From positions 17,781,190 to 17,845,189 of the forward strand of contig NC_085846.1 of assembly GCF_035594765.1 (NCBI RefSeq): 64,000 bases of DNA, in the 5' to 3' direction. The notes below the pieces were generated by a model that saw only the letters and a list, made by a program, of their open reading frames with translations, did no database searches and was not told the DNA's origin. Source of the stretch: Anolis carolinensis (Eukaryota). Made by a program: the position numbers and the translations under genes. Positions 2,727 through 23,976 of this stretch are shown in pieces. The stretch's first letter is position 1, and every line of letters starts with the position of its first letter.

Positions 2727-3987
2727 CTATTTCTCCAAAGGTGCATAGTTCAACAGTTTCTCAATCAAATCCACATGCGAGAGAAGCATCCGCCGACAGC
2801 AGTAGCGCTTTAAGCCGAGCGCATCCAATGCGTCCCTAAAAGAGACAATGGAAAAATAAATACGACATATCTCTTAAAATGTTTGCCTTGGGACAGTGTG
2901 TGTGCTTGTATCTCTTCTCCCCATGTAGGGCTGCCAAGTTGTGCCTCCAAAAAGCATGATATGTAGAGATGAGCTTATAAATGCCTCCTCCTAGGCTGTG
3001 AAGAAGTTTCACCTACTACTTATAGTGACCTGCACGCCACATATGTAGACCATAGCAGCTTTCTATAGTAGACTTGCAGGCATACCAAATATACCCTTTC
3101 TTAGAGATATAGGACCAAAGCTGGATATGCACTGCAATATAAAATCCATATCTGCTTTGAACTGATTATATGGCAATGTATACTCATAATCCAGTCAAAG
3201 ATGATAATGTGGATTATATGATTTGATAATCTGGATTATATGGTAGTGTGGACTCAGCCCAAGAGTGCATCTACACCAGGCATGGGCAAACTTCGGTCTT
3301 CCAGGTGTTTTGGACTTCAACTCCCACAATTCCTAACAGTCTGCTGGCTGTTTGGAATTATGGGAGTTGAAGTCCAAAACACCTGGAAGACCGAAGTTTG
3401 CCCATGCCTGGTGTAGATGCACTCTTGGGCTGAGTCCACACTACCACACGGAGGGCCGAAGTTTGCCCATGCCTTATCTACACTGTAGAAGTAATGCAGT
3501 TTGATACCACTTTAACTGCCATGGCTCAATGGCGTGGAATCCTGGGAGTTGTAATTTGTGTGGAACCAGCACTCTTTGGCAGAGAAAGCTAACAAACTTG
3601 CAAAACTGCAACTTCTATGATTCCAGTTTAAAGTGATGTCAAACTGCATTAATTCTACAGTGCAGATGCACTCCTAGATTCAGTCTATAGTATATCACAC
3701 TAAAATGTGAACAGGAATCATTGATTCCTAACTGCCCCTGATGGCAGTGACTGGACTGTTAAATCAGTAAGAACGACTAAGAACATTCCCTGGGTTTGAT
3801 ATAAGTTGGGTCTGCTTCTTCTCGAAGCTGACAATCGTATAAGATTTTTATCAAAGGCCCTCCATGGACCCCACCTTCACCTGCAAACTCACCCTTCGGT
3901 ATATTCAGCCTGCAAGAGGCCCAGGTAGGCTTCCCATTTGTTTCCCACGACTTTGCCACAAGTGAAGCATCGGACAGGGATGATCAT
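2727..3987 (-). CDS. POLR2L: RNA polymerase I/II/III shared subunit RPABC5/RPB10 (POLR2L or paralogue), 67 aa
   Basis: Coding exons 3987-3893 ([32 protein letters not shown]) and 2835-2727 ([35 protein letters not shown]), GT-AG phase-2 intron, 204 nt total; zinc ligands CxxC...CC intact. An AG acceptor at 4009-4010 implies an upstream non-coding exon. Confidence 0.96.
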
Positions 3988-5360
3988 TTTTCAGACAGCT
4001 TCGAATATCTTAGTATGGGACAAAGAGAGAAAATGTGAGATATTCAGACTTGTCTTTTCTTCCTATCATCCCTGCTTTGCTATCCAGACCCTCTTTACAA
4101 GCCAGCACAAGCAGGAGACATAGTGCCTCCAGGTGTTTTGGACTTCAACTCCCACCATTCCTAACAGCCTCAGGCCCCTTCCTTTCCCCCCTCAGCCGCT
4201 TAAGCTTAAGCGGCTGAGGGGGAAAAGGAAGGGGCCTGAGGCTGTTAGGAATGGTGGGAGTTGAAGTCCAAAACACCCGGCGGGCCAAACTTTGCCCTTA
4301 CCTGTCCTATATGTATAGCCACAAACGACAGGTAAGAGTTAAATGAGGCATTGCTCTGTTCACCATAATTAAATTCTTCAGTAATAGTCTTATTATTACA
4401 GTGGGTCCTTGGTATCCCCTGGGGTTTGCGTCCTATATTCCCCATGTAGAACACAGCATTTGATATTTGTTATCGGTCTCCCATCCAAATACTAACCAGG
4501 GGTGACCCTGCTTAGCTTCCAAGATCAGAAGGGATAATAGGCCTTTAGGGATGTGTAGGCCAGTCCAACTGCTTAACTGTTGCTGTTGCTATTGTTGGTT
4601 GAGTGGGCTTATTACAAAAGACCCTCCTCATAAATGTACAGCAGAGTAACTTATTAGTAGCAGCGTGACCCAGCACCAGTAACCAAAAGTGATTAGAAGA
4701 ACACACAGACCAATGTTTATCTCTTTCTTTGAAGGCACGTCTTTATAGCAAGATAATATGGTTGCACTATTTACAAAAAACAAGGTTTCCATAACACAAA
4801 TAAAGTTCTTTATACTTTTTTCTTTGCTTCCACACTGTGCTTCTTTTTCATGAAGATAAACAACTTCGCTCTCACACAGCCTCCTCTCACAATGAACTTA
4901 CACAGGAGCTTTACACACAATGTCATTCACGCAGGAGCTTCACACATGAGGCCTTCAACCTGGGGCTTCTCTCACACGGAAGCTTCTCACACCAGGCCGT
5001 CTCACGCTGAGGCCTACTTCACACTGAGGGCTACTTCACACTGAGGCGTTCTCACACACTGAGGCATTCTAAGCTACAGGCACACCTACTTATATTGAAC
5101 TGCAGTTTTTGCTGAGTCATTGCATTAATTTAACCCTTTCAATGCTGACTCACATTTTTGTAATTATGTGTCATCCTTTCTGACCTATGGCAACCTTATT
5201 ATGGGTCTTCTGCTGGGCTTCTTTCTCATGTACATAAACAGGTTCGCTTTCACAGTGCCTCCTCTCTCAACGAACTTACACAGGAGCTTCACACAGGAGC
5301 TTCACACACAGCATCCTTTGCAGTGGAGTTTCACACACAAGGCCTTTTAATCCTTTAGTA

Positions 5361-21300: not shown

Positions 21301-23976
21301 AGAAGGAGGAATCCACACATTCTGCCCTTCCCATGAAGCTCAGGCAGAATCAAGCTGCGGTACCTTCTTCTAGTGTGTTATTATGTTTATTTATACTCAA
21401 TTTTTTCTCTCCATAAATGAGACTCAAAGTGGCTGTATATGTGTTATTCCTCATTCATAACTTTTGAAAGCTTGACCACACTTTGATCCTGCTTGGCCTC
21501 TCACATGTTTTAGTTCTCATCTGTGAAATGTTGCCAGGTATGCTAGACTGCTATGGTTTCCAAACTAGTATTCTCACCAAGGTAGCCATTTGTTGTTGTT
21601 GAAAGTACAGCCCTCACTGAAATATTGAGCTGAGAAGAAAAGGGATCCCATTTTGCCTGAACAAGAAGTCTTTGATTGCCTTTGACTGGGAACTGCATAT
21701 TTCCACCTTCCATCCTTACTGACACCTGCATTAAAAGCCATTGTACAGCTAAATAATTTTAGATTATGAATTTAACGATCTTACTAGTTGGAAATTGCTT
21801 TGGTGAAGCACAACATTAATGCTTCTCTGCAACCAAACTCCTATTTATGCTTTACAACTGCTTCCAAATTCGTTATGTCAGAACATAAGACTGATTTTGA
21901 TTACTGCTCTAGAATGATTTTTAAAAATAGGTTGATTCTCCTTTTGAATTTCAAAATTCTAGTTTTATTCCTGTGTTTTCTATGAGACGTGTATTTCAGA
22001 TTTTTTTAATGTGTCAGAAGCGACTTGAGAACATCCTGCAAGTCGCTTCTGGTGTGAGAGAATTGGCCGTTTACAGAGACGTTGCCCAGGGGACGCCCGG
22101 ATGTGTTAGCTGGCAGTCTTCTCTCATGTCCCCACAAGCTAGAGCTGACAGATGGGAGCTCACCCAGTCTCGCAGATTCAAACTGTCAACCTTCAGCTCT
22201 ACAAACCAACCTTCAGGCCAGCAGGCCAGCCGACACAAGGGTTTAACCCATTGTTCCATTGCAGCTCTGTATTTCAGATGTCTTAATTTCATTATGAGCA
22301 CTTGAACATTTATGTTTATATTTAGAATGGACAAAGGTAGAAAGCAAGGATATACATATGCAGAAATTTTAGGGAAAATATTAAGGCTGTACTGTGGGTA
22401 CATACTGTACTCAATTTTCTCTCCTTCCTCTTTTTTTAAAATCCCGAAATACTGACAAACATAATGAAAATAGTACTATTTGTGTAACCAGACTGAATTA
22501 TAATCTAACAGTTAAGGTTTTCTGCAGTAGAAACTACTGAAACTGCACGTAATGCATGGACTTGATCTTCCATACCTTCTGACCATTTCTGCAGTTTGAC
22601 TTGTGTTTATTTTGTGTACGATTCCCTGCAGCCCTGTTATGAGAAGGTGAAACTCTGGTTAGGAGAGAACATTTCTGCAATGGGCATCTTTGCTGCCTGC
22701 ATCATCGTTGTCCAGGTGAGATGGTCGGCTTGTTGCTAAGGACCAATTCAGCCATGTTTACATCTCTTTACACAATTCACCTGCTTTTGATATTGATAGG
22801 AAGGGAGAAGAAGCTATTCTATAGTAACTCAGGGGCCTGTAATTTAAGGCAAAAGAATAATAAAAAACAGAGGGTTGATGACCTGAAGATTCATTAAGCA
22901 TTGCTTGAAGGGATTTACTAAGCATAGATCACACCGTTCAAAGTTTATCACTGCTGTCTTTAAATGGGGAAATTGTGGCATCCAGATTTCTTGGACTGTA
23001 CATATAGCAGCCCTTTAGGCAGCACAATCAATGAGGAGTAATGTGTGGATGGGATCATGCAAGGAAGGTAGACTTTTTACAGTAATCCCCATCTCATCTC
23101 CATTCAGACATTAGTTGGGAAGCAGAATGGAAAGACGGGTGGTGGATTCACATGTCTCCGGGGCTGTTTGCAGTGGCAGAGCACATGCTTACATGCCTAG
23201 GAAGCTGTACCACTTCTAAGTTGGGTAATCTTTAGAGTCCTGGTGGCGAAGTGCATTAAAGTACTGAGCTGGAGACCAAACAGTCCCAAGTTCAAACCCC
23301 GGGAGTGGCGTGAGCGGCCGCTGTTAGCTCCAGCTCCTGCCAACCTAGCAGTTCGAAAACATGCCAATGTGAGTAGATCAATAGGTACCGCTCCGGCGGG
23401 AAGGTAATGGCGCTCCATGCAGTCATGCTGGCCACATGACCTTGGAGGTGTCTATGGACAACGCCAGCTCTTCGGCTTAGAAATGGAGATGAGCACCAAC
23501 CCCCAGAGTCAGACATGACTGGACTGAACGTCAGGGAAAACCTTTACCTTTTAATCTTGTCTTCATGGCTCATTAGTTACTTTCCAGTTTTCTTCACCCC
23601 ATTTAAGAATCCTGTGGTGGATCTTTTATTTGCAAAGCTGTGATCTATCACAGAGCTACTGCCAGTGTAGGCAATACTAGACTAGATGGTGAACTGCGAT
23701 CTGGCAATTTCATGTTCCCCAGATGATGGCACTACGGCACCACTGACCAAGGACTGTCTTGTCTTTTCTGTCATTTTTAGAGGCACGGAGACAGGACAGA
23801 GTTGGACATTTTCAGAGTGGGGACTTTTGAGATGTCATGATAACGTGAACTAGGGAGTCAACCCTACTGCTTTCAGCCTAATATATCACTCCTCTCCCTC
23901 CCAACAGGTCTTGGGCATTGTGTTCTCCATGCTGATGTACTGCCAGGTTCGGAGAGCAGAGAAGTACTATGACTGA
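18362..23976 (+). CDS. Tetraspanin of the TSPAN4/TSPAN9 family (tetraspanin-4-like), 239 aa
   Basis: Exons 18362-18430, 19407-19598, 19968-20042, 20939-21040, 21138-21266, 22632-22715, 23908-23976, all phase 0 GT-AG, 720 nt. Four hydrophobic segments, FRCCG motif, six-Cys large loop, ends MYCQVRRAEKYYD*. 5'UTR acceptor at 18348; AATAAA at 24330 and 24557. Symbol withheld because orthology to TSPAN4 is doubtful. Confidence 0.93.
18550..18862 (-). mobile_element. Sauria SINE
   Basis: (ACCTTT)n tail seen as GTAAAGGTAAAGG; typical body and tRNA-related head. Confidence 0.8.
23238..23552 (+). mobile_element. Sauria SINE
   Basis: GGTGGCGAAGTG A-box head, GTTCAAACC B-box, AAACCTTTACCTTT tail; reverse complement of the 18550 copy. 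Confidence 0.8.

Follow-up and report, generated by a model that had tools for sequence, protein, structure and literature searches.

How a gene for the RNA polymerase subunit RPB10 (POLR2L) and a tetraspanin gene related to TSPAN4 came to lie side by side among PRMT1, AKT1S1 and TBC1D17 is the question raised by a 64,000-nucleotide stretch of the Anolis carolinensis genome (contig NC_085846.1 of assembly GCF_035594765.1, positions 17,781,190 to 17,845,189; hereafter the window). The gene order in the window, which contains zero Ns, is PRMT1, POLR2L (-), tetraspanin (+), AKT1S1 (-) and TBC1D17 (+). Human 11p15.5 holds POLR2L, TSPAN4, CHID1 and AP2A2, and 19q13.33 holds PRMT1, AP2A1, AKT1S1 and TBC1D17. 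A first-pass annotation made from the sequence alone had read the Anolis pair as the 19q-paralogon copy left by the vertebrate genome duplications, not as a translocation, a reading now supported by the gene tree, by a recurring gene order and by a second pair in squamates. We consider it likely that the two genes, here called POLR2L-b and TSPAN4-like, are an ohnologue copy from the jawed-vertebrate genome duplication and not the product of a translocation.

Phylogeny of the tetraspanin

Homologues were gathered in a full-length search with the cobra protein as query (unnamed matches were sorted by nearest reference and kept out of the trees), and two IQ-TREE runs on 47 and 35 proteins, with amphioxus and a hemichordate as outgroup and CD53 left out, gave trees that agree. 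The TSPAN4-like clade (support 99/95 and 98/93) spans squamates, tuatara, turtle, alligator, amphibians, coelacanth, bichir, gar, teleost and elephant shark, and its tetrapod members, including Xenopus tropicalis AAI67361 and the window protein, form a clade of their own (100/97). TSPAN4 proper (99/97) comprises sequences of bichir, teleosts, mammals, birds and Sceloporus; the two clades are sisters (96/91), and TSPAN9 and the lamprey protein fall outside the pair. In approximately unbiased (AU) tests, forcing the sauropsid proteins into amniote TSPAN4 was rejected (p-AU 0.0002), as was grouping TSPAN4-like with TSPAN9 (p-AU 0.013). The gene tree that had been proposed as a check hence sets the window tetraspanin outside amniote TSPAN4, in a clade reaching from shark to lizard, and its candidacy as orthologue of mammalian TSPAN4 is rejected by the separate clade and by the first of these tests. 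The name "tetraspanin 4" is also carried by two proteins of X. tropicalis (NP_001016284 and XP_012822023) that cluster with AAI67361, and so sits on the paralogue.

These results bear directly on the idea that an ordinary POLR2L-TSPAN4 pair was relocated to the 19q13-type block within reptiles, its TSPAN4 then evolving fast. Several databases do name the protein "tetraspanin-4", and it is 58-60% identical to TSPAN4; however, nesting within amniote TSPAN4 is what the AU test rejects, the clade extends to fish and shark, and squamates also carry true TSPAN4 with its own POLR2L (Sceloporus chromosome 1) and two POLR2L genes (cobra). The Sceloporus pair together with the AU rejection refutes such a move for squamates as a group, and we regard it as highly improbable.

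As to timing, bichir has both TSPAN4-like and TSPAN4, on different chromosomes, so the duplication predates the split of ray-finned and lobe-finned fishes. The elephant shark tetraspanin has three derived residues in common with TSPAN4-like and none with TSPAN4, and its loop is 39 residues long, as in most TSPAN4-like proteins; TSPAN4, the lamprey protein and most TSPAN9 proteins have 40. Judged from its strong branch support, these residues and the shorter loop, the shark gene probably puts the duplication before the divergence of sharks; since the AU test does not force it into TSPAN4-like, the ray-finned/lobe-finned split is the firm lower bound. The duplication thus came after the split from invertebrates and before bony fishes radiated, with amphioxus, hemichordate and lamprey outside, which is the timing of a pair from the second round of genome duplication (2R).

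A second pair in squamates

On chromosome 1 of Sceloporus (fence lizard), a 67-residue POLR2L and a 934-kb TSPAN4 gene stand head-to-head, and chromosome 1 of the cobra holds a second POLR2L whose product has isoleucine 13 and alanine 51 (I13/A51), i.e., the mammalian RPB10 sequence in PDB. Synonymous differences per site (pS) between the Anolis window gene and the two cobra genes amount to 0.52 for the copy on chromosome Z and 0.90 for that on chromosome 1. Squamates have two POLR2L loci and, across cobra and Sceloporus together, each faces a TSPAN4-type gene; the second pair that the first-pass annotation had suggested looking for therefore exists in squamates as a group.

The two pairs hold the same gene families in divergent orientation (Sceloporus chromosome 1 and human 11p15.5), and an AP2A gene lies downstream, as the shark locus shows. 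They differ in that the window RPB10 has V13/S51 and not I13/A51, its tetraspanin is only ~58-60% identical to TSPAN4 and encoded by a compact gene, and its neighbors are PRMT1, AKT1S1 and TBC1D17. TSPAN4 spans 233 kb in bichir and 934 kb in Sceloporus, compared with a coding span of 2-10 kb for TSPAN4-like, and mean identity to the lamprey protein is 53% for TSPAN4-like vs 62% for TSPAN4. A compact and faster evolving TSPAN4-like beside a huge TSPAN4 would fit the asymmetry expected of two subgenomes.

Conserved gene order

The pair recurs in a turtle, a crocodilian and a shark, three of the groups proposed earlier for comparison, and also in the cobra. Chromosome Z of the cobra (154.6 Mb) carries POLR2L, the tetraspanin and AKT1S1 in the order and orientation of Anolis; alligator has TBC1D17, AKT1S1, tetraspanin and POLR2L; leatherback turtle has PRMT1, POLR2L, tetraspanin, AKT1S1 and TBC1D17; and elephant shark has POLR2L (-), tetraspanin (+) and an AP2 alpha-adaptin gene (+). 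Linkage to PRMT, which the first-pass annotation took to be ancestral, was seen only in Anolis and leatherback, and AP2A is a better shared third marker than PRMT. The shark order POLR2L-tetraspanin-AP2A fits a three-gene block that was copied whole. The order of TSPAN9 and PRMT8 at human 12p13 is different.

An assembly misjoin, or a dead duplicate copy, would be the most trivial explanation for the Anolis locus. The interval is repeat-rich and no single DNA contig runs across it, but the order is found in three other sauropsids, spliced transcripts match the locus free of mismatches, and selection is evident in both genes (no non-synonymous differences, i.e., pN 0, in POLR2L; a ratio of non-synonymous to synonymous rates, dN/dS, of 0.08 in the tetraspanin). 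Because POLR2L-tetraspanin-AKT1S1 recurs in the independent assemblies of cobra, alligator and leatherback, the misjoin named at the outset as a possible refutation is itself refuted, and we find an artefact or a dead copy scarcely credible.

Annotation of the pair is uneven in these genomes. The intact cobra POLR2L on chromosome Z (locus L004, 3000-5382), whose protein is identical to that of Anolis, is missing from the called genes. In leatherback, the AKT1S1 model (locus L007, 5810-17348) covers the tetraspanin and stops at the POLR2L stop codon, either an annotation fusion or read-through, so that POLR2L is left without a model of its own.

Farther afield, a hemichordate TSPAN4-like gene and POLR2L are both recorded on sequences of 23,840,982 bp, probably one chromosome, and neither lies within 10 kb of the other; for bichir TSPAN4, no neighboring gene was called within 10 kb.

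Genome duplication or segmental copy

We propose that an ancestral block, POLR2L (<-) TSPAN4 (->) ... AP2A (->), would have been doubled at the second whole-genome duplication, that of jawed vertebrates. One of the products would have become the 11p15-type locus with POLR2L (I13/A51), TSPAN4, CHID1 and AP2A2, and the other the 19q13-type locus with POLR2L (V13/S51) and TSPAN4-like beside PRMT1, AKT1S1 and TBC1D17, in which case TSPAN4-like would complete the TSPAN4/TSPAN9/CD53 set as its missing fourth gene. The segments involved would be those of the neurotrophin and glycoprotein-hormone paralogon (human chromosomes 1, 11, 12 and 19), in which the chromosome 11 and 19 segments are sister products of the genome duplications, as opposed to those of chromosomes 12 and 1, and the chromosome 19 segment lies on anole chromosome 6 (Dos Santos et al. 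2011, PMC3280201). The split between (TSPAN4, TSPAN4-like) and TSPAN9 matches this pairing of chromosomes 11 and 19, which is the one seen for BDNF and NTF4; tetraspanins, POLR2L, PRMT and AP2A find no mention in that paper.

The closest competitor is a segmental duplication that copied POLR2L-TSPAN4 early in jawed or bony vertebrates, the copy being inserted by PRMT1 and AKT1S1 with no genome duplication involved. It draws on a published classification, on branch lengths and on the AU test of the shark gene; the further points below weigh against a genome-duplication origin. "TSPAN4-like" of ray-finned fish, Xenopus and reptiles has been called "probably an independent duplicate of TSPAN4", of small scale (Huang et al. 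2010, PMC2965184); TSPAN4-like branches are long; the AU test leaves other placements of the shark gene open (p 0.154), and no TSPAN4 proper of shark was retrieved among the sequences gathered. CD53 is absent from the tree, and the elephant shark AP2A, read from exon 1 only, may be either A1 or A2. V13 and S51 are found in invertebrate RPB10 too and may therefore be ancestral, which makes them no copy marker on their own. Javanese medaka (loci L002 and L003) has two POLR2L genes, 96% alike in nucleotides, neither of them near a tetraspanin.

The medaka genes have lipase-3, CPSF6-7 and Sdh5-domain genes as neighbors in one case and SYCP2, CBM21 and FAM217-domain genes in the other, and four amino acids are changed in the second of them. 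In this teleost, POLR2L appears to have changed its place and to have been duplicated anew, and we set the two aside as a recent duplicate.

A segmental copy, however, must land by chance in the known sister paralogon of TSPAN4's own segment, must bring along or encounter an AP2A gene of matching orientation (shark), and must also show the branching expected from a genome duplication; moreover, no synteny stands behind the independent-duplicate call in the text and supplements of Huang et al. (2010) as searched. We thus hold a segmental origin to be unlikely, and suggest that the pair would be of whole-genome origin.

The two genes in the Anolis window

The gene models and other features that define the locus are as follows (window positions).

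259 to 342, plus strand: last coding exon of PRMT1, its 28 codons 100% identical to the last exon of the leatherback PRMT gene (PRMT_C) at the orthologous locus
2515 to 2835, minus strand: last exon of POLR2L-b (coding 2835-2727, 3' untranslated region to ~2515, AATAAA at 2544-2539; Pfam RNA_pol_N, RNA-type contigs)
3893 to 4008, minus strand: first coding exon of POLR2L-b (ATG at 3987, acceptor at 4009; contig pieces 3892-4008)
7160 to 7241, minus strand: probable untranslated first exon of POLR2L-b, limits approximate (CpG-rich stretch, GT donor at 7159, read depth)
7801 to 9816, plus strand: insertion resembling a solo long terminal repeat (LTR), with TG...CA ends and an ATGT target-site duplication
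13254 to 13466, plus strand: conserved non-coding block (cobra match, splice donor), probably a 5' untranslated exon or promoter of TSPAN4-like
18362 to 23976, plus strand: TSPAN4-like, seven coding exons, 239 residues, large loop with six cysteines; polyadenylation signal at 24330
25964 to 31995, minus strand: coding span of AKT1S1 (PRAS40; Pfam PRAS_NT and PRAS), a neighbor in cobra, turtle and alligator too
38165 to 59837, plus strand: coding span of TBC1D17 (Pfam PH_RBD and RabGAP-TBC), a neighbor in turtle and alligator too

Exon models, Pfam matches and flanking genes bear out the earlier description of an intact, divergent POLR2L and tetraspanin directly between PRMT1 and AKT1S1. Intactness holds for both genes by frames, domains and selection; splicing, also claimed for both, is borne out by contigs for POLR2L-b and by the exon model only for the tetraspanin.

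POLR2L-b encodes 67 residues in two coding exons (3987-3893 and 2835-2727, minus strand) separated by a GT-AG intron of 1057 nucleotides. Both coding exons match Pfam RNA_pol_N (PF01194), which places the protein in the RPB10 family, and with its CxxC...CC zinc ligands and ~67-residue length it shares 65 of 67 residues with mammalian RPB10 as seen in solved structures (PDB). Contigs from runs of two studies, taken as RNA by guess and not by record, join 3892-4008 to 2515/2520-2834 with zero mismatches to the locus, the unique intron bins of the gene being without depth, and the transcript ends ~25 nucleotides beyond AATAAA. POLR2L-b makes a spliced mRNA. Reads were recruited at 85% likeness and included no transcript of the second POLR2L, which at ~78% likeness (cobra) would fall below that threshold. 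The spliced contigs carry an extra 54 and 82 nucleotides, which account in full for the depth of bin 7132-7300 (25.5 and 6.3); the observed/expected CpG ratio is 0.69 in 7001-7500, around the probable first exon. From these extra bases, the bin depth and the GT donor, we infer a gene of three exons. The V13/S51 protein is identical in Anolis, cobra (chromosome Z), leatherback, alligator and elephant shark at pS 0.4-1.0 and pN 0, and on these comparisons the gene is under purifying selection.

TSPAN4-like has coding exons at 18362-18430, 19407-19598, 19968-20042, 20939-21040, 21138-21266, 22632-22715 and 23908-23976, a structure read from splice sites and frames in the DNA. All introns are GT-AG and in phase 0, the 239-residue frame has no stop or frameshift, and exons 2 and 5 match Pfam Tetraspanin. 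It has CCG, D-W and PxxCC plus two more cysteines in the loop, the 6-cys-a pattern given for the TSPAN4 subfamily (Table 1 of Huang et al. 2010, PMC2965184). Its dN/dS against cobra is ~0.08, indicating purifying selection.

The pair had also been called head-to-head. Divergent orientation stands, tight spacing does not, as the two start codons are 14.4 kb apart in Anolis and 884 bp apart in alligator. The two likely 5' ends in Anolis (7160-7241 vs 13254-13466) are ~6 kb apart with the 2.0-kb solo LTR between them; given this difference in spacing, a promoter shared by POLR2L and TSPAN4-like is plausible in alligator and would be conjectural in Anolis. The LTR-like element (2016 bp) sits inside another repeat, has a TATA-like box at about 9563 and AATAAA at about 9645, and had no counterpart by blastn in the intergenic intervals of cobra, turtle, alligator and shark. 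The conserved block at 13254-13466 matches cobra (locus L004, 10032-10170) with 77% identity over 139 nucleotides, the sole non-repeat match in the interval, and ends in a splice donor (AAG/GTGAGG, 13466/13467). In alligator and turtle the locus is tightly packed, with 70-80% GC between the two genes, a type of DNA often missing in bird assemblies. Farther along the window, AKT1S1 and TBC1D17 are likewise divergent, with CpG-rich promoter-like stretches at 35150-35360 and 38020-38190, ~2.8 kb apart and with repeats between.

Absence in mammals and birds

Of 480 matches, 120 were listed, and every named one from a mammal or bird is TSPAN4 or TSPAN9; no TSPAN4-like is listed in mammals by Huang et al. 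(2010, PMC2965184). The claim that the module was lost in mammals hence agrees with the listed matches and with that survey; it holds as absence there only, with no direct genome scan. Going by the matches listed, the pair was probably lost in mammals. Birds may lack TSPAN4-like or may have it missing from their assemblies, as is known for genes of the chromosome 19 segment (PMC3280201).

Relation to known systems and significance

The tetraspanin lineage itself is known, since the window protein belongs to the one that Huang et al. called TSPAN4-like (AAI67361, "tetraspanin-4-like" in RefSeq) and falls in one clade with it. Where an independent duplicate was proposed there, synteny and tree at the window point to a copy left by genome duplication, which probably has a member in chondrichthyans and lies next to a second POLR2L. 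Retention of a duplicated RNA-polymerase subunit gene from early vertebrates is likewise described for POLR3G and POLR3GL (PMC3875860); those, however, are specific to polymerase III and kept in mammals, whereas RPB10 is common to all three polymerases, only two residues separate its copies, and no second copy turned up in mammals. A literature search that took in few subscription journals, and not the tables of ohnologues in Lamb 2021 (PMC8040251), where the quartet may be listed, brought up no paper on a second POLR2L of vertebrates or on the fourth-ohnologue placement, and databases annotate alligator and shark POLR2L-b as plain RPABC5. What is probably new is thus TSPAN4-like as a probable fourth ohnologue and a long-kept second RPB10.

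POLR2L-b is predicted to be a normal zinc-binding RPB10, most likely interchangeable in polymerases I, II and III, this being the simplest reading because there are only two conservative differences. The two copies might be kept for dosage, or their two promoters might share out tissues or stages. TSPAN4-like is a six-cysteine tetraspanin, most likely an organizer of membrane microdomains like TSPAN4 and TSPAN9, and faster evolving. A further-reaching idea, possible but doubtful, is that most non-mammalian jawed vertebrates have two 2R RPB10 genes (I13/A51 and V13/S51), fixed for some 400-450 My through different use (by tissue, by stage or by preference among polymerases I, II and III), and that TSPAN4-like, as the fourth TSPAN4/TSPAN9/CD53 ohnologue, has a role of its own, the two being lost together in mammals.

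With the cobra gene unannotated, that of leatherback fused and the X. tropicalis "tetraspanin 4" a paralogue, studies across species that deal with TSPAN4 (migrasomes), or that use POLR2L as a reference or essential gene, may end up with the unintended copy. The case is one of a familiar process, ohnologue retention with lineage-specific loss. If the genome-duplication origin is true, the fourth slot of the vertebrate tetraspanin quartet would be filled and the published classification revised, and RPB10, usually treated as strictly single-copy, would be kept in duplicate from shark to lizard, offering a test of dosage balance vs divided expression.

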